In this document: piece after piece, positions 11,799-58,470 of the stretch
Layout of the letters: the number at the start of each line of letters is the position of its first letter
How positions within the stretch are numbered: the stretch's first letter is position 1
Assembly (NCBI GenBank): GCA_011109175.1
Contig: RDEW01000003.1
Coordinates: 1 to 64,000 of the forward strand
Direction of reading: 5' to 3'
DNA length: 64,000 bases
DNA from: Dicyema japonicum
Taxonomy: Eukaryota; Animalia; Dicyemida
Program-made: the position numbers and the translations under genes
Notes under the pieces: generated by a model
Database searches by the model: none
The model's input: only the letters and a program-made list of their open reading frames with translations
What the model was told of the DNA's origin: nothing

Positions 11799-13384
11799 CA
11801 GTCGAAAAAACATTTCTTCTTTCATTAATACCGGATCAGTCATTTCAAGATTAATTCAAATAGATGAAGTTAAACAAGTTTCTAATGAAGTCAATCAATT
11901 TGAAAAACTTGACGAATTAACTTTTAATGCTTTTCGTCGTTTGAGGGATGATTCCTTTTCTATTTCTGGTACTTTAATCAAAGCCATCGCGAAAAAAATA
12001 TCGACAAAATTGAATTATTCAACATCTTTTAAAGCCTCAAACGGTTGGTTAGACAGATTTAAGAAGAGACATGATCTGGTTTTTAAAGCCATTTGTGGTG
12101 AAAAAAATTCAGCAGATAAAAGTAATTTGGCAAATTTTTTCTTTCAATTCGATAATTTGTTGAAAACTTATGGTCATGAAAATATTTTTAACTGTGATGA
12201 AACATCTTTGTATGTTAAAAAATTTCCTTCAAGATCTTATGTCGAATCTATAGAAACATGTCATGGTACAAAATTCAGTAAAAAAAGAGTAACAGTTCTC
12301 CTTTGCTGTAATGCATCAGGAAATAAATTAAGACCCCTTGTTATTGGAAAATACAAATCACCTCGTTGTATGAAAAGTTTGCTTAATTATATTTTAACAT
12401 AGATTTTGATTGTGAAAAATTCGGTATTTTATATGCAGCGTCAAAAAATTCCTGGATGAATAGAGAAATTTTCAAAATGTGGCTTTCAAAGATTAACGAC
12501 GACTTTCTCTCACAAGATAGAAAAATACTTTTAATAATGGATATTACTACATGACATTATTTATTGGAATACTCAAATGTTAAATTGTTTTTTCTTCCGA
12601 AAAAGACAACATCTTTGATTCAACCTTTAGACATGGGTATAATAAAGTGTTTTAAAGTACATTACATAAACTTCCTAATGGATTTTATGCTCAATTTGGA
12701 AGAAGATACAACAATTAATCTTAAATTTTTAAAAAAAATATAGATATGCGACAGATTATGGTACTTGCTAAAAAGGCGTGGATGGAAGTTAAAGAAACAA
12801 CAGTAATTAATTGTTGGAAGAAAATTGAGGAAAATAAAGAAGAATCAGTTGAAGATAAAAATTGTGGGGAAGAACTCCTGGAAGAAATAGTAACTGAAGT
12901 AATATCTGAAGAAAACGAAGATCTAGTCAAGAGTTGCGAGTTTTATAATGGAGTTAACACAGGGGACAAAACAACGATGTCAGAAACTTATGAAATGATG
13001 GATAAGTTAGAAAATGTAGCGCAAAATACATCTTTTGAGACACTCCAAAAATATTATGAGTTTAGATTTCAGCTTGGAAAAGATTTAAGAAATAAGAAAA
13101 ATTTGAAATTGACTGATTATTTCAAAAAATGTTTTAAAAATAATGATTTATTAATTAATCAAAGTCAAATAAAAAACATAGAATAGAAATCTATCAAACT
13201 ATGAAGCAAAAAAGCACAACTTATTATATAAACACTTTGGAAGATGTGAGAAGTTCTTTGTTTGCAAAGTAAACAAAAATGGAAGTTAAATGAACTATAA
13301 TTCAATAGTTTGAACCAAACCCCGGTTTGGAAGGGCACCTCCGCTTTTTGGGGCACTTTGATGACCCACCCCGGGGTTCGACTG
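11799..13384 (+). mobile_element. Tigger/pogo transposon with CENP-B HTH + DDE transposase containing a 26-nt intron (copy A); left end uncertain
   Basis: FKASNGWLDRFKKRH, IFNCDET, SWMNREIF and IQPLDMGII motifs. Right TIR ...CCCCGGGGTTCGACTG|TA. Only an 8-bp TA|CAGTCGAA match on the left. In-frame stop near the second catalytic D (MDITT*H). Confidence 0.9.
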
Positions 13385-40677: not shown

Positions 40678-43600
40678 GCACGTTTATTAAGTGGTGTGGT
40701 GTGACCAACAAAAATCTCATGGAAATTAAAGAACGAAAAGAAGGCAAAGTACGAGGAACAAATCCAGTACGGACAAATCAGGTATGTTTTTTATGTGGAC
40801 AATCGAACATCAGGAAATATGGGATTAACTGCACACAATGTGAATCATTCGCCCATCTGGGCTGCATAAAAATGAGTAAAGCTTGCGCCGAGACGCTGTC
40901 GAGTTGGCTGTGCCCCTCTTGTATTGGAATGGAGGCCCCCAGGCGGGAAAAAATAACTCAGTCAAACTTTACACTGCCACATACAGACCATACTCTCTTG
41001 AAGATCTCGAACCTCAGGAAAGCCATGAAGATCCCAGTAAAAATCCCTAAAGGAGTACGAATTGCCGCAGCAACGTGTCTTTCAGATGCCATTGATCACG
41101 CACTATCCTCTGACAGTTGGGAATCCTGGCTAAAACTTATATGCTTTGCACCTGTCGCACTCGGAATACCTACAAAGGAATCTGAGGACAATAATAAAGA
41201 AACAAACTCCCGACTCAACTTATCCGGGAAACTGAAACGAAACATAATGAATTTTAGCTGTCATAACATACACGCAATACTTGAACATCCACTTAATGTC
41301 AATGAGGTCGAAACCAGAGGAGCATTCATCAAAGATGCCCCCAACAAACTAAAGGAGAGAGTAAACCGGAAACTTCTGGAAGGCGACGTGCGGGCAGCCT
41401 TACGAGTTATCACATCCGATGACACAGTATTGTCTTGTACCCCCGAGGTCCTAAATACCTTAATACTAAAGCATCCAGATGCACCGACTGACTATGAAAA
41501 GTTTTTGAATCCTGAAGGAACCCAGGAGATAATCATTACTGAATCCGAAGTGCGCCACGGAATAACTTCCTTCGCGGCTAGCAGCGGTGGAGGCTTGGAA
41601 GGGTTACGTCCTGGCCATATTAAGGACCTTACGTCCACTTACACCTCGGAAGCTGGACGGTGTCTTGTCAAATCAATTACGGACCTAATCAGAAAAATGG
41701 TTAACGGCGACATCCCAAAATATGCCAGAGAATTGCTCTTCTCTGCAAGGCTACTTGCTTTCAAAAAACCCAACGGAGGAATCCGCCCCATTGCGGTCGG
41801 GAACTATTTTAGAAGACTTGCAGCAAAAGTAGCATCGACCATGGTGAGCAGACAACTCGGAGAGGAGTTCTTTCCTAAACAAATGGGTGTTAGTATCCAG
41901 AACGGATGTGAGGTTGCGGTTCATGCAGCAAGGCGTTTCTTCACACAGAAAAATATTTCAAATGAATGCATTGGAATCAAGTTGGACATAACGAATGCCT
42001 TTAATTCTCTCAGAAGAGACGAAATTATGAAAACGTGTTGGAAGAGGGCTCCAAAGCTTTTCCCTCTTGTCAATCTGTCCTATGGTGAAGATACGTCTTT
42101 GGTTTTTGAAAATGAAATTATTAAATCAAAAACGGGTGTACAACAAGGAGATCCGCTCGGACCTCTATTATTTGCCTTGACCATTGATGAGGTTGTGAGC
42201 TCAATTGATGCTCAGCTAAATCTCTGGTACCTCGATGATGCCACAATTGGAGGATCGTTCAAAGAAACATACAATTCATTACGTAAAGCGTTACCCGCTT
42301 TAAAACATTTGGGCTTGGACATCAATGTTAACAAATCAGAGCTAATAAATGTCTCATATCCATACACCGACTTCCTCTCTATCAAGGAGTCTTTTGAAGA
42401 ACTGCTTCCTGGGATCCCGACTGTGCCAGTTGATAAATTATATTTCCTCGGATGCCCACTCAGCGAAGAAGAACTCAAGAACCATCTACTTTCCAAAAAT
42501 GAAGAATTAACACGCCTTGCGAAAAGATTGTCATGTCTCGACTCTCACACATCTTTCTTTCTATGAGAAACAACATCGGACTACCCAAGCTTTTATATCT
42601 ACTCCGATGTTCACCCTGCTACGAACAATATGACATTCTACTTTCAATGACAAGTCTCTCAAGCAAACAGTCGAGTCAATAATTAACGTCCGCTTCGACG
42701 AACTTGGTTGGAAACAATGCAAGCTTCCCTCTGGATTTGGGGGTGTCGGAATGAGATCGGCGCTGGAGGTTGCGTACCCGGCATACCTATCATCTCTCTC
42801 AAGCTGCAGTCATTTGACACGGCAAGTCCTTCATAACACAATTGGACTTTGCTGGAATGAGTCATTTGACGAAGCTTGTCGGAAATGGAACGGGTCCGGA
42901 CTCAAAATCCCAGAAGACACAACAAGCAAAAAATTGGGATGACATTGTCTGCTCCAAAATTTTGAAGACCTTAAGAAAGAAGCAAATCAACATCGTCTGG
43001 CTTGTTTGGTGTCAGCTTCAAGTCGAGGGAGTGGAGCATGGCTTGGTGCAATACCTTGCCCAAACCTCGGGACCTTTTTGGACGACGATTCTTTGAGGAT
43101 TGGAATCGGACAAAGGCTGGGACTAGACGTTTGCCAGGAGCACCGATGCCGATGCGGGAAAACAGTCGATGCGAAAGGATTGCACCCGCTGTCCTGCAGA
43201 AGAAGCGCCGGAAGGGGACCACGTCATGCTGCTCTGAATGATGTGATCGTCAGAGCTCTGAAGGCTTCAGGCTTCCCAGCACAGCTTGAACCAGTGGGTC
43301 TTGATCGAGGAGATGGGAAGAGACCTGACGGGATGACCCTTTTCCCCTTCACGTCTGGAAGATCTTTGGTCTGGGACGCAACTTGCATAGACACGTTCTC
43401 AAGCACGAACATTTTTAAATCTGTTCAGACACCTGGAGCAGCTGCTTCGACCGGAAAACCTAAAAATCAAGAAATATTCTTGCCTCGGGGATCGCTACCA
43501 TTTACTCCTGTTGCGACCGAATCATCGGGAGCCGTTGGTCCAATGACGGCTGAATTCTTGCAAGAACTCGGAGGATTGCTTGCCAAAAAGAAAAGGGATC

Positions 43601-44788: not shown

Positions 44789-47494
44789 ATGAATGTGATG
44801 AAGACAAAGTATTTTTTAATTTAAATTAGTTATTCTGTGATTGATGAAATTAAGTCAATATATTCAGGCGGGAAAATACAAGTATCTATGGCCATTTATA
44901 TATTAGCCATCCAAAGAAGGTGATTCATTCCTTTGTCATCTCAAAGTCATGTCAGAATTCACGAGAAATCCGCTCATTTTTCGAGGTTTTCTCAAATTGA
45001 CTATTAAAGGAGGATGACCCGATCACTCACTTTAGTCTGTCTCCCGATAACAAAATCTTAATAACAGCTCATAACAGTCTGGCTATTCGCCACTGGGATT
45101 GGGTTTCAGCAAGACTTAACAAAATCTGGAGATCTGGTCACAAAAGTGCTATTAGATGTGTTGAATTTGATCCTTCATCAACCCTCGTCTGCTCTGCTGG
45201 TGACGACAAATTGATAAAGGTGTGGAACTCCCAACAGTTTTACTGCACTCATACCTTCAAAGGTCACTCTTCTCCAATTACGTAATATTCCACTTATTCT
45301 CCAGAATTTGTCGCTTTTTTCTTCAAAGACTCTTTTCTGTGTCTCTTGATGGTGTAATATTCGTTTGGGATCTTACTGAGAGTAAGAAGGTGACAGAAAT
45401 AAGCCTGCATACAGCCCACATCACTGACTGTGTGTTTTACCGTTCGTATTTTTGCAGGTTTTTGCTGTTTAGTTATTTTAGTGTGTCAAATGATTGTACT
45501 ATGGCAGTGTTTGACCTTACCAGTCTTACATTGGTTAAATCGTTGGCTACTGATGAGGAAATGCAGGCTGTTGTGAGTATAGATAAAGGATTACTCACTG
45601 TAAGCTCCAAAGGTATGCTTATATTGTAACTTATAGGAACTGTAATTCTGTGGGATGTTGAAAAATCTACAATTCTTTCAAAATATCAGATATCCGTTGA
45701 GGATTTTTTTCTCACTTCTTTCAATTGTTCGTAAATAACGGATTCCTGGCAACTACCAGCCAAAACAATATCATTATGTTGGATTACAAGTTCAATGTCT
45801 TCAAACAGGTTTTACGACTGCTTTATATTCAGATTCCTGGAGATTATGAAGGTGTAGTGTCCGCAGTTTTTGTCGGGGTGGACTGCTCTCACTTGGTTGT
45901 TGCCAGTTCTACTGCCTCGTCTCTTCGTCTGTGTGGCTTATATAATGGAAAATCTCACTTTTTTACCCGCCATAACTCACCATTAATTTGTGCAACAGTT
46001 TCTCGCGACAGAAAACGAGTAGCTTCTGCTTCCCAGGATGGAATGGTTGTCGTGTGGATGTTTGAGGATGAATCTCTCAAAGTAGAGAGTGTGGCAACTG
46101 GGCATACATCAGCAGTTAATGTACTCGCCTTTGCATAGTAATTTGTTTTGTAATAAATCAGTGATGGGAGCTTTGTTATGAGTGGCAGTGCGAGTGACTG
46201 TCACGTGAAGATCTGGCCTTTGGGGAAACAAGTTTTAAGTTGTAAGAGAACTGTGGAGACTCATAAAAAGACTTTGACTGACTTGGTTGTATCTCCCAAT
46301 GATTCGTTTTTCGCTACAAGTTCGAGAGATAAGGTGATTAAGGTATTTTGATATTAAATTGTTTAGTTGTGGTCTGTCAAAACTTTTGATTTGGTGTCAG
46401 TTCTGAAGGGACACCGTAAAGCTGTACTCTGTCTGTCGTTTTCCCCCGTTGACAAAGTTTTGGCAAGTTCCTCTACCGATGGGGTTATTTTTATTTGGTC
46501 TCTGACAACATACAGTGTCATAAAGACACTTGAAGGATCGCAAGAGTCTGTTTATAATGTTAAATTCATAAGTAAAGGAACTCAGTTGATCTCGAGGTTA
46601 CAGTTTGTCATATTTTTGCAGCTGTGCTGACGGACTTTTACGACTGTGGTCAGTGAAGACTAGTGAATGCATTAAAACTCTAGAGGATCACAAAGACAGA
46701 GTTTATTCGCTAGATTTCAACTTGGATGAGTCACGACTTGTCTCTGCTGGAGAAAATTCGGTGATTTACTTATGGCGAGATACTTCTGAGGATGACAGAG
46801 TCCAAGAATTGACGGAAAATCGGGAACTGATGACAAAGTATTATTTATTTGTTAAATTAGAAAACAAATGCTCGACAACTTTCTCAATTTTGGTAACCTG
46901 GCTGAAGCTCTCCCTTTAACCTTGGAATTAGACAGACCACAGACGTTGTTAACTATAATTCAAAGTATTAGTTGATTAATTGTAATTCAAGAACTTTATA
47001 AGTTATCAAATATTGCTGGTTCTGTTAAAACGTTGAAAAAATCCTTTTCTGAACTTCCACCTTCAGGAATTGGTAATCCTTCATTTTATTTTAAAGAAAA
47101 ACTGTTGGAATTCTGTGTCGTATGGAATGGAAACAGTCGAACATGTTTTGAAGCTCAACTTGCTTTGTCCGCACTTTTGAGAGCATATGAGCCCGAGAAG
47201 TTGATGAAACAAGTCGTTAATATTAATCCGATTCTTGAGGGATTGATTGGTTTTCAGGAAAGGCATTTTGCAAGGATTTCTTCGTTGGCTAATCAAACCG
47301 GTTTCCTCGATTTTATTGGTGCCAACTTCATTGGTCTCAGAGTTGATAGTTCTGTCACTGCTGAGAATAATTTAATTGAGGATGATTGTGCTTATCTGGT
47401 TAATACTTCGCAACCCAAGAAGTTTAAAGCGGAAAATACTGAGGGTTCGCCAGATCTTTCTGTTCTTATAAGAAATAGTATTGGAAATAAATAG
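44789..47494 (+). CDS. TBL3: Transducin beta-like 3 / UTP13, WD40 U3-snoRNP protein; many short introns
   Basis: N-terminus MNVMKTNYSVIDEIKSIYSGGKIQ after removing a 21-nt intron (44,809-44,829); EDDPITHFSLSPDNKILITA; WD repeats LKGHRKAVLCLSFSPVDKVLASSSTD; Utp13 domain LLEFCVVWNGNSRTCFEAQ. Confidence 0.92.
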
Positions 47495-54174: not shown

Positions 54175-55964
54175 ATGATTTCGAAAATAAGTTGGTTTTA
54201 TAAGAATTTATAGCAATTTCGCTATATTGCATCAATATAATAATAAGCATGTTAGGAGAACGTGATTTTTATCAAAGCGAAAATACAGGTACATATTAGA
54301 AAATTATCATTTAACCGCATTTTCATAATTATGCTATTTTAGAAAGTGAATCAGCTAACAATTTTGATATTTCGAATAAAAGCAATGAAGGTATACGTTA
54401 ACAAATTTTTATTTCACCATTTTTTTCATAATTGTTATTTTAGATGAATCAATTAACACGGATGATACTTCCAATCTAGGTATATGCTGACAAATCATCA
54501 TTTAATCACTTTTTATGATTATACTATTTTAGGCAAGAGTGTCTATGGAAATGTTGTCATTAAAAAAAGTAAAGATTAATAAAATATCATTAACCACTAT
54601 TTCATTACTTTAGAAACCGAAACACCTATGGGAGAAGACGCTGTTGATTTTTCCAACAAAAGTATATATTAGCAAATTATCATTAACCACTATTTCATTA
54701 CTTTAGAAACCGAAACACCTAAGCGAAAAGACGCTATTGATTCTTCCACCGCAAGTATATATTTGCAATTATCATTTGACTCATTTTTCATAATTATGCT
54801 ATTTTAGAAGCTAAAACAGTTAACACTGATGATATTTCGGGTAAAAACTCAGGTACACGTTAACAGATTTTTATTTCACCACTTTTTCATAATTGTTATT
54901 TTAGATGAATCAATTAACACTGATGATACTTCCAATCTAGGTATACAATGACAAATCATCATTTAATCACTTTTTATGATTATACTATTTTAGGCAAGAG
55001 TGTCTATGGAAATGTTGTCATTAATAAAAGTAAAGATTAATAAAATATCATTAACCACTATTTTACTTTAGAAACCAAAACACCTATGGGAGAAGACGCT
55101 GTTGATTTTTCCAACAAAAGTAAATATTAGCAAATTATCATTTAACCACTATTTCACTACTATAGAAAATAAAAAACCTACTGGGGATGACCAAGTTTCC
55201 ACCGAAAGTATATATTAACAATTACCATTTAACCACTTTTTCTTTACCTTAGAAAATAAAGAACCTGATGGGAAGGAAGATATCTCTGTTAAAAGTAAGT
55301 ATTTTACCAATTTTCGTTACTTTAGATAATGCAAAACCTGATGGCAAAGATGCAATTCCCACTGGAAGTAAATATTAACAAATTATTTTACAATCTCTTA
55401 TATATTACTTTAGAAAATGGTTTAAACCGAGGAATCTCCACCACCCAAGCACAAACTGGTACATACTATCAGATTATCATTTAATCACTTTTTTATAATA
55501 TAACTTTAGATTATACATTTTTTCACACCACACGTACAACTACACGTAGTACTCCCACAAGTACCTACTAACAGATTATTATTCCATTACTGTGATAATT
55601 ATTCTAGAAAGTACAACTACTCAAAATATCTTAATTCGTTTTAATGGTACATATTAAAGGATTATTATTTAATCACTTTATAATAATTATATTAGAAAAT
55701 GAACCTGATTTTCCTAGGAAAGGTAAAAAAATCATTATTTTATCATTTTCATATAATTTATTACTTTAGATGATGACGCAGAATCTATTCCAAAGAAAGG
55801 TATTGACAATTCATTATTTAATCACTGTTGTGCAGTTTATTACCCTTTAAGATAAATCATCGGCTGGTGGAAGCTATAATATTCCAATGAAAGGTATTTT
55901 ATTAATATTTTTATTTTCAGGAACCTTAACCCTTTTCCTTTGGGTAGTACTAGTTACCTTCTAA
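54175..55964 (+). CDS. Micro-exon gene: 21 exons, ~291-aa predicted secreted/GPI-anchored low-complexity (S/T/D/E/K/N-rich) surface protein
   Basis: Manual splicing of 20 GT-AG introns gives one open frame from ATG 54,175 to TAA 55,962-64. Internal exon lengths are 75,48,36,36,48,48,45,36,36,48,42,42,42,45,51,39,27,30,42 nt, all phase 1-1. N-terminus MISKITISLYCINIIISMLG; C-terminus DKSSAGGSYNIPMKGTLTLFLWVVLVTF*. Confidence 0.9.
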
Positions 55965-56039: not shown

Positions 56040-58470
56040 CTTAGTCATTAAGTTTCAATTTAACATCAAACGGTATTTATTCGTACGTTCCTTGAGTAGA
56101 TACTAACAGGACAATCGATAATAAACAGGAGGTTCAACTTTATAGTTAGATACTAGATCTGATTTATTGTGTGAATGGTTACGTATACGTTACTAGATGT
56201 AATGGGGGTATTGTAAAGGAACTAGCTGACAAATTTTATGCTGTCATTATTCTCGCATGGACTGCGGTTATCACTAATAAAGTGTGCTATTTATGTGAGA
56301 ATTCGGTAAATTCAGTAAGATTTTTGGAACAAGAGTAAGTTAGGAACTGTTTAATATTTACAAAATTACGCAGTTTTGTGTCAAAATGATACAAAAGGGA
56401 CTATTTATCTCCCCCACTTTACTAGAAGGGTTTCCACAACTGCAAGGACAGAACGTTTTCTTCTCTTTTCATTGGTTTTGGATGGCCCTGTGATATAGGG
56501 AGGTCTCTGCTTCTGTGACCGTGGAAACAGGATGCATTTAATTAGTTATTAACTTATTTCTGTGCGTATCCGGCTTATTAAAACATCACTAACATGCTTT
56601 CATAATAAAATAAGAGTCATTATTAAAAATCTCTGAGCTAATATTTCCTAAGAGCCATTTGCTGGACTTTGTAAAATTTTCATTGTACAAATTTTCCCAT
56701 AAGTTGGTTCGAATAGACACACCAAGTCATCATCTTCAATTGTTTTTTTAACAAACTCACTTAAATTGTATGAAAAAATATACCGAGCACTTAATAGAGG
56801 ACAAAAACCTTTCATAGTCAAATAAGGCTCTAGTCTTAGAATCATTCGGATTCTAGTGCTTTTAATGGGAAGCTAGCTCTGAGTGAACATATTGAGAAAA
56901 CAGCTATCCACGATTAAGAATATTTGTCCGATAAAAATCTAAGTCTCTCCAGAATTGAAAGAACCCGGAAGATCATCCGTCTGAAAGTTACATGCATAGG
57001 ATAATAGTTAATGTCGCTAATAAAGCATAACTCTCAAGCAAGGTAGTTGTATTTGTGCGATTTTTTCAACTTTAATGATCTTAATCTCATTCTTCATTTT
57101 TAATATAATAAATATCAGACAAAACCTTTGATCCAAAGTGAGGTGAAGTAGGCATTACGCACATTTATATGCCTCTACCTAAATAACTACCGAGAAAGAT
57201 GGTAATAGTAACCAATTTAGTTAGGTAATCCCAGTTCTCCTTATCACCCTTGGCATATTTATCAGCAAGGGACCCCATTTTCTGATTAATTAACCCCACG
57301 GTTAACTGGTCGTTCAAATATCTTGATTTAATAATTTTCGAAAAAAAATTCATAAATTGAGAGGACTAAGCCATTATTAATGAAATTAAACACAAGTTGA
57401 TTATATCCCCCTCACACCAAATCATTTTATTGGATCCGTGCGAGCGTCTGTGCTTCGCTTTTACGTTCTTAACTGCCAGCTTAACTTGAGGGGCTGAGAA
57501 AGTAAATAATGTTGAGTATGGCTGTGATTGGCTAATGTGGGGTTAATTATTGAACAGCCTGTAGTCAATATCCAAAGGTCACCTTGATGTACTCAAAGTT
57601 GAATTAACAATATTCTTCATTAAATCTAACGAATAATATTTTATTTAAAATAAATAATGATAACAATCTTTGCCTTCTTAACTTCCTGTAATCTACCTGA
57701 CTCAGGAGACGTTCAGTGCCTGGCCGGCATTATAAAGGGACCCTCTTTCCCACTCAAGTTGGAGGGTTCTCACATTGACTATTATTGATAAACATGATTA
57801 TTGGAAAGGTTGCTTCCAAATCCTCCTGGAGTAACTGGATAAAGGCTTTTAAATAAACTCAAATCCTTGACTCATATATTCAAGTACCGGAAATCAAGAA
57901 GAAAAGAAAGCTAATAGTAAAGAGTCCAAGGGATAAGGTAGGACATAAGATGCGCAAGCCCCAGCTTAACATTACTCCTTTTTTTAATGAAGTTTGGTAT
58001 TCGTAGTATTCACTTTTGTGATTATGTACGCTCCTTTTGCAAACGAATTGAAGATATTCCATCGATGCAAAGTTAATGTTATTCTTCATGCAAGTTCCAC
58101 GAGACTGTTTGGGCATATCCTGAGAATGGACACTACCCCTCCCCTTTATTTCTAATGACATTATGTATAAATTGGTCTTGTTCATTTGATGGATTTCTTT
58201 TAAGCATCATCATAAAATCAAACCTTCGTAAAAACTCTCAATTATTTTTTACTCCGATTAAATTCCATTTAAAAAATTTTAAAATAATATTCAACAGCTT
58301 CAAGCCAACTTTCCCGTCTGGTCAGAAATACTTCAGGTGGATATTCAATTTCAATAAATCTTTATCTTCTTGTGTTGATTTTTATTCGCATGGCACCACA
58401 TGGGTAAATAATTTAATTTCGATCACTTTGCGAGTTGATATAAAATTCGCCAGTAATTTTAAATAATGAA
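56040..58470. other. Unresolved region: possible intron-rich minus-strand gene remnant mixed with repeat fragments
   Basis: Short minus-strand ORFs (56648, 57165, 57880) with plausible short introns; one RALFDYE (SH3-like start). An RTE-like RLFGHILRMD fragment lies at about 58,100-58,140 (+). No coherent model obtained. Confidence 0.25.

Follow-up and report, generated by a model that had tools for sequence, protein, structure and literature searches.

Little is understood of the function of micro-exon genes (MEGs), which have been encountered in parasitic flatworms and in one myxozoan. They have been reported in Schistosoma, Echinococcus and Hymenolepis (PMC7653826), and a MEG of the myxozoan Tetracapsuloides, which a preliminary description of the locus presented here had mentioned, is indeed found in the literature (PMC8481699). 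Olson et al. 2020 (PMC7653826) define a MEG by the presence of at least seven exons, at least half of which are micro-exons, that is, exons shorter than 70 nt and a multiple of three (3n) in length, with a run of at least four of these; 52 such genes are counted in the tapeworm Hymenolepis microstoma and 35 in Echinococcus multilocularis. The description given for schistosomes is stricter. According to Berriman 2009 / DeMarco 2010, as quoted in PMC8293314, the coding region of a schistosome MEG is composed mainly of symmetric exons of at most 36 bp, while PMC10526429 gives exons of 6-81 nt, mostly 15 nt, and introns of 100-5000 nt. The mature region of schistosome MEGs is described in PMC4350168 as evolving fast, and the neighbourhoods of these genes as TE-rich. 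A literature search returned no paper coupling ‘micro-exon gene’ with ‘dicyemid’, and the searched passages of the Dicyema japonicum genome paper (PMC6736024) make no mention of MEGs.

The locus described here belongs to D. japonicum, which parasitises octopus kidneys and whose introns typically measure about 20-26 nt, and lies in a window of 64,000 nt, which is the whole stretch of DNA analysed (contig RDEW01000003.1, positions 1 to 64,000 of the forward strand). Between positions 54175 and 55964, short and less AT-rich blocks alternate with AT-rich blocks that begin with GTA and end mostly with TTTAG. The longest plain, unspliced ORF in this interval is 51 aa, and the preliminary description was right that no ORF is called here. 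When the sequence is spliced by script on the + strand, 21 exons joined over 20 introns yield a single frame of 876 nt, from ATG to TAA, with 291 codons. The 20 GT-AG introns, the 876-nt frame and the 19 symmetric phase-1 internal exons of 27-75 nt that had been proposed previously were thereby reproduced to the base. That a real gene with 21 tiny exons occupies this interval is almost certain; the gene is predicted to encode a secreted and probably membrane-anchored coat protein, and its parts are as follows.

54175-55964, + strand: whole coding region from ATG to TAA, 21 exons, 291 aa (splice-model script)
54175-54190, + strand: exon 1, 16 nt, ATG and start of the signal-like segment, ends in phase 1
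54191-54213, + strand: intron 1, 23 nt, ordinary tiny-intron size for the genome
54214-54288, + strand: exon 2, 75 nt, hydrophobic core of the signal-like N-terminus
54343-54390, + strand: exon 3, 48 nt, phase 1-1
54391-54706, + strand: young duplicated tract, copy 1 (intron 3 to intron 6), 91-98% identical, segment by segment, to 54853-55165
54444-54479, + strand: exon 4, 36 nt, phase 1-1, 97% identical to exon 9
54533-54568, + strand: exon 5, 36 nt, phase 1-1, 97% identical to exon 10
54614-54661, + strand: exon 6, 48 nt, phase 1-1, 98% identical to exon 11 and 83% to exon 7
54707-54754, + strand: exon 7, 48 nt, phase 1-1
54808-54852, + strand: exon 8, 45 nt, phase 1-1, 67% identical to exon 3, with a 3-nt indel
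54853-55165, + strand: young duplicated tract, copy 2 (intron 8 to intron 11)
54905-54940, + strand: exon 9, 36 nt, phase 1-1
54994-55029, + strand: exon 10, 36 nt, phase 1-1
55072-55119, + strand: exon 11, 48 nt, phase 1-1
55166-55207, + strand: exon 12, 42 nt, phase 1-1
55253-55294, + strand: exon 13, 42 nt, phase 1-1
55326-55367, + strand: exon 14, 42 nt, phase 1-1
55414-55458, + strand: exon 15, 45 nt, phase 1-1, beginning of the Thr-rich stretch
55510-55560, + strand: exon 16, 51 nt, phase 1-1, Thr-rich
55608-55646, + strand: exon 17, 39 nt, phase 1-1, Thr-rich
55696-55722, + strand: exon 18, 27 nt, phase 1-1
55770-55799, + strand: exon 19, 30 nt, phase 1-1
55852-55893, + strand: exon 20, 42 nt, phase 1-1, small residues (SSAGGS) before the tail
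55894-55920, + strand: intron 20, 27 nt, 3n, stop-free, possibly coding
55921-55964, + strand: exon 21, 44 nt, hydrophobic C-terminal tail and TAA stop
56120-56125, + strand: candidate polyadenylation signal, the first AATAAA past the stop, 155 nt downstream

All 20 introns start with GT and end with AG, the acceptor reading TAG in 17 cases, AAG in two and CAG in one. The 19 internal exons (75, 48, 36, 36, 48, 48, 45, 36, 36, 48, 42, 42, 42, 45, 51, 39, 27, 30 and 42 nt) show nine distinct lengths with a median of 42 nt, and every one of them combines a 3n length with phase 1-1. All 210 possible forward exon joins remain in frame and are free of stops, the codon created at the junction encoding K, E, N, D, G, R, S or T. 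This bears out the earlier proposal that any subset of exons can be skipped without a frameshift. Exon skipping at the RNA level would be frame-safe under such a design, this being a property of the gene and not a demonstration of skipping. If intron 1 is retained, the frame stops after 12 codons. Intron 20 has a 3n length and contains no stop, and read-through preserves the frame; it resembles an ordinary tiny intron of the D. japonicum genome, and it may also be coding, in which case the gene would have 18 internal exons and a last exon of 113 nt. The count of 19 internal exons therefore stands for the gene as modelled, with 18 as the possible alternative.

The coding signal of the micro-exon gene is established. 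In the spliced sequence, the coding frame is free of internal stops, versus 14 and 43 stops in the other two frames; offset 2 is open in every exon, and none of 20,000 within-exon shuffles stayed open. Read-through in the frame of the preceding exon meets a stop in 17 of the 20 introns. GC content is 34% in the exons and 21% in the introns (26% over the stretch as a whole), and the intron lengths, from 23 to 54 nt, are distributed 7/6/7 over the mod-3 classes, with no bias towards 3n. The exon borders were not set by the reading frame; they are fixed by the mutually alignable introns. A splice-chain scan applying fixed splice rules to both strands of the whole window recovered a long chain only at 54175-55964, where 16 exons were linked under the stricter rules of the scan; no chain of at least four exons was detected elsewhere in the window on either strand, and the longest chain in ten shuffles had a length of 4. 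A gene on the reverse strand was considered and rejected: no chain of at least four exons is present there, and on that strand the introns begin with CT and end with AC.

A UTP13/TBL3-like WD40 gene at about 45001-47491 (+), with a Utp13 domain (E=2.8e-17) and GT-AG introns whose best-fitting candidates measure 21-29 nt, provided an in-window control for normal intron size. Judged by this control, introns 1, 13 and 20 (23, 31 and 27 nt) are of normal size, and the remaining 17 introns, at 42-54 nt, are about twice as long as is usual in the genome. The 18 internal introns fit one consensus with a mean column identity of 68%, and the consensus of the 17 longer introns contains an invariant A within a TTAAC-like motif; this shared motif may be a branch site. 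Two branch-site-like motifs can be distinguished in the longer-intron consensus (54289-55851), one TTAACA/CTGACA/CTAACA-like at intron positions 7-13 and the other, TCATTTAAYCAC, in mid-intron, and a search of the window outside the micro-exon locus revealed no copies of the mid-intron motif beyond chance. That the double-length introns might each consist of two tiny introns flanking a hidden exon was also considered and discarded, as intron 2, inspected by eye, has no internal AG/GT pair at usable spacing.

Since the 18 internal introns share one consensus, the exon+intron units descend from one another, and the gene grew via tandem duplication of these units. A young event is still visible in the tract extending from intron 3 to intron 6, which recurs as intron 8 to intron 11 with 91-98% identity. 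Just beyond this young tract, the exon pairs 3/8 and 7/12 are 67% and 60% identical, with length differences of 3 and 6 nt. Among paralogous units in general, exon lengths differ by 3 or 6 nt and intron lengths mostly by amounts that are not 3n. The introns are also more alike than the exons (0.67 versus 0.50, and in 129 of 136 unit pairs), and pooled pN/pS among paralogous exons amounts to 1.13 for older pairs and 0.54 for young pairs, values that derive from very few sites and from paralogues only. The protein modules seem to have been free to change while the short introns were held, presumably by splicing needs or gene conversion. In the mechanism that we propose, the gene was built by repeated tandem duplication of exon+intron units with breakpoints in mutually similar introns, and every gain or loss of a unit is in frame because the duplication edges sit in introns and the units are all 3n and phase 1-1. 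Tandem unit duplication suffices alone to explain the symmetric micro-exon design.

The same similarity among introns leaves room for variation at the DNA level, in which the introns would act as recombination substrates and unequal crossing-over or gene conversion would gain, lose or homogenise exon units and thereby generate in-frame alleles that differ between individuals in length and sequence, each of them constitutively spliced. Such unit turnover would be as good a route to diversity as exon skipping. The common intron consensus speaks for it, as does the copying of the young tract at 91-98% identity with edges in or beside introns, the flanking exon pairs 3/8 and 7/12 being only 60-67% identical, but the one other DNA sample has the same structure with no difference in unit number seen, which is a weak test given that its short contigs break at the duplicates; overall, we regard current variation of this kind as unlikely.

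This sample is represented by four public runs that cover the micro-exon locus, all of them genomic DNA; the run searches returned no others for the locus and none labelled as RNA. Their contigs are colinear through the introns and contain no joints (for example, one 886-nt contig spans 55093-55977), and the Nextera adapter is present. In all four runs, the contig depth at the micro-exon gene equals that of its flanks, while a very high-copy repeat starting at 56407 (56407-56500 and beyond) reaches about 40-70 times the depth of the gene and has many divergent loose ends. The micro-exon locus is on these grounds single-copy, and the possibility that it is itself a high-copy repeat or transposon is ruled out by DNA depth. 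Depth is raised over 54391-54706, where letters of the second copy (54853-55165) are read on the first, and this fits two real copies of the tract with contigs collapsing onto one. Four differences separate the runs from the window (55907, 56014, 56019 and 56102): 1-nt insertions in intron 20 and in the 3′ flank and, also in that flank, a T>G substitution and a deletion of 9 nt. None of these affects an exon, and the exon differences listed at 54460 and 54564 are the letters of the second copy.

From the observed exon/intron anatomy, coding signal, duplication history and hydropathy layout, we consider it fairly probable that the locus is a single-copy, real protein-coding gene of a tiny-intron genome, encoding a GPI- or tail-anchored surface coat protein of 291 aa and built by tandem exon+intron duplication. 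We infer from sequence features that the gene is transcribed and spliced, and that its product is secreted, anchored and active at the surface.

Hydropathy analysis places the only hydrophobic windows at residues 2-21 and 278-291. The N-terminus, composed of Met, Lys, about 15 hydrophobic residues and then small residues before the hydrophilic part, appears signal-peptide-like by hydropathy and inspection. It is followed by a hydrophilic middle of about 185 residues, made of short modules of three recurring types, which is Cys-free and acidic (pI 5.1) and in which Thr, Lys, Ser, Asp and Asn are abundant. Within the mature part (residues 21-263), whose GRAVY is -1.31, 54 of 243 residues are Ser or Thr and none is Cys. 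A Thr-rich stalk is present, and over residues 206-245 Ser and Thr account for 17 of 40 positions. At the C-terminus, a 7-residue spacer separates SSAGGS from the hydrophobic tail, which ends the protein; its 13 residues in the spliced model are few for a GPI signal, and it would be 22 residues long if intron 20 were coding. The Ser/Thr-rich, Cys-free, disordered ectodomain of GPI-anchored mucin-like proteins is found here, and the succession of signal peptide, small residues with a spacer and terminal hydrophobic tail fits the GPI pattern by hydropathy and inspection. The layout of the product looks like that of a coat protein held by a GPI or tail anchor and probably O-glycosylated, and the surface location suggested in the preliminary description agrees with these predictions, as the N-terminus resembles a signal peptide and the C-terminus a membrane or GPI tail. 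Under the proposed mechanism, a protein consisting of a signal-like N-terminus, the modular hydrophilic middle, the Thr-rich stalk and a hydrophobic tail after small residues would coat the surface of the parasite in an O-glycosylated, GPI- or tail-anchored form.

The only in-frame stretch of at least 30 aa, a 36-aa C-terminal piece read through intron 20, was compared with 1.84 billion representative proteins, among which the share of RNA-derived proteins of this organism is uncalibrated, and no credible match was obtained, a result that is weakly negative at most. The sole match, a repetitive, GC-rich protein of 1,443 aa for which no aligned stretch was reported, was judged spurious. As this query gave nothing else, the product is not visibly present among public predicted proteins.

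The result of this search, together with the AT-richness of the locus (26% GC) and its position among transposons, is what could be expected of a non-functioning locus, either a degenerate tandem repeat that appears spliceable or a gene silenced too recently to have decayed. We nevertheless judge this reading very improbable. Exon length changed independently at least eight times, always by a 3n amount, while the introns are unconstrained, and for eight such changes, at one third each, the probability that all are 3n is about 1.5e-4; the 291 codons include no stop despite a GC content of 34%, in contrast with the 14 and 43 stops of the alternative frames; and the layout from signal to tail is coherent, whereas in a dead repeat such features would not survive across units sharing only about 50% identity.

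Evaluated by the definition of Olson et al. 2020, the dicyemid gene has 21 exons, of which 18 are micro-exons that make up 85% of the CDS, and exons 3-20 form a run of 18. By the stricter schistosome description, only six of the 19 internal exons, or 201 of 876 nt, are 36 nt or shorter, though all are symmetric, and the introns, at 23-54 nt, fall below the range given for schistosomes; their shortness is due to the genome-wide tiny-intron regime. The signal peptide and exposed product of schistosome MEGs have a counterpart, by hydropathy and inspection, in the hydrophobic residues 2-21 that follow the Lys. The MEG-type architecture claimed in the preliminary description consequently holds in the sense of Olson et al. 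2020 and fails in the narrower sense of exons of at most 36 nt and long introns.

Several likenesses to Schistosoma MEGs can be listed. The CDS consists mostly of short symmetric 3n exons, with a signal-peptide exon at one end and a terminal exon at the other, and secretion or exposure is predicted for the product. The mature region may be fast-evolving, the neighbourhood is TE-rich and the design is frame-safe for skipping. Unlike Schistosoma MEGs, the dicyemid gene has exons of 27-75 nt and introns of 23-54 nt, with the whole gene contained in 1.8 kb, its exon units are visibly tandem duplicates, its bearer probably lives in an invertebrate host, and its alternative splicing is hypothetical. 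Tapeworm MEGs are comparable in that the full operational definition applies to both and that they too are repetitive and hard for gene finders, but they belong to another phylum and the introns of the dicyemid gene are far shorter. The MEG antigen of Tetracapsuloides bryosalmonae (PMC8481699) is likewise a MEG-type gene of a non-flatworm parasite, with a product located on the parasite surface; it differs in coming from a cnidarian parasite of fish and in that expression and antibody recognition have been demonstrated for it.

The resemblance to schistosome genes raises the possibility of splice diversification, in which regulated or stochastic skipping of the 19 symmetric exons would produce in-frame surface isoforms and alter what the host sees of the parasite. 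The 210 stop-free joins and the uniform phase 1-1 of the internal exons would permit it, and the near-uniform splice sites and introns would make the exons interchangeable to the spliceosome. The mature part, which may be evolving fast (pN/pS about 1, exons less alike than introns), and the TE-rich neighbourhood also recall schistosome MEGs as described in PMC4350168. The symmetry, however, is fully explained by the duplication history, and with a median of 42 nt the exons exceed schistosome micro-exons, which mostly measure 15 nt.

The nature of the host must also be taken into account. Cephalopods, the probable host of dicyemids, lack antibody-based immunity, and this removes the classical selective reason for antigenic variation. 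In all, we hold skipping as a source of surface isoforms to be quite unlikely. The variable-antigen reading put forward previously keeps the support of a frame-safe symmetric design, but its rationale is weakened by the antibody-less host, and duplication explains the design equally well.

A broader proposal would be that dicyemids independently evolved MEG-type genes whose symmetric exons are shuffled, by RNA skipping or DNA recombination, in order to vary the surface coat, which in our estimation is rather improbable. If true, the MEG design would be convergent at host-parasite interfaces in at least three animal phyla and would not be tied to adaptive immunity, and the special double-length, motif-bearing introns would serve shuffling in a genome where normal introns are about 23 nt long. 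For the single-copy surface coat gene that we favour, other consequences can be considered. Standard gene finding would miss a class of probable surface proteins in the 5,012-gene D. japonicum genome. A compact MEG-type gene of 1.8 kb is moreover unusually tractable, as all junctions fall within a few short reads or one amplicon, and at this size it is a simple matter to examine whether symmetric micro-exons serve variation or represent only the footprint of tandem duplication.

The window as a whole has a GC content of about 35% and is repeat-rich, and the corresponding values published for the D. japonicum genome (PMC6736024) are 36.7% GC and 49% repeats. Positions 1-40000 of the window are occupied by a tandem segmental repeat of about 12,985-13,000 nt, present in at least three copies that are 91-100% identical, which carries fragments of pogo/Tc5 transposase (e.g. 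the ORF at 11941-12402) and of RT. An ORF of 621 aa at 40701-42566 (+), with a reverse-transcriptase domain and a weak N-terminal match to a PHD finger under Pfam's cut-off, is probably a retrotransposon.
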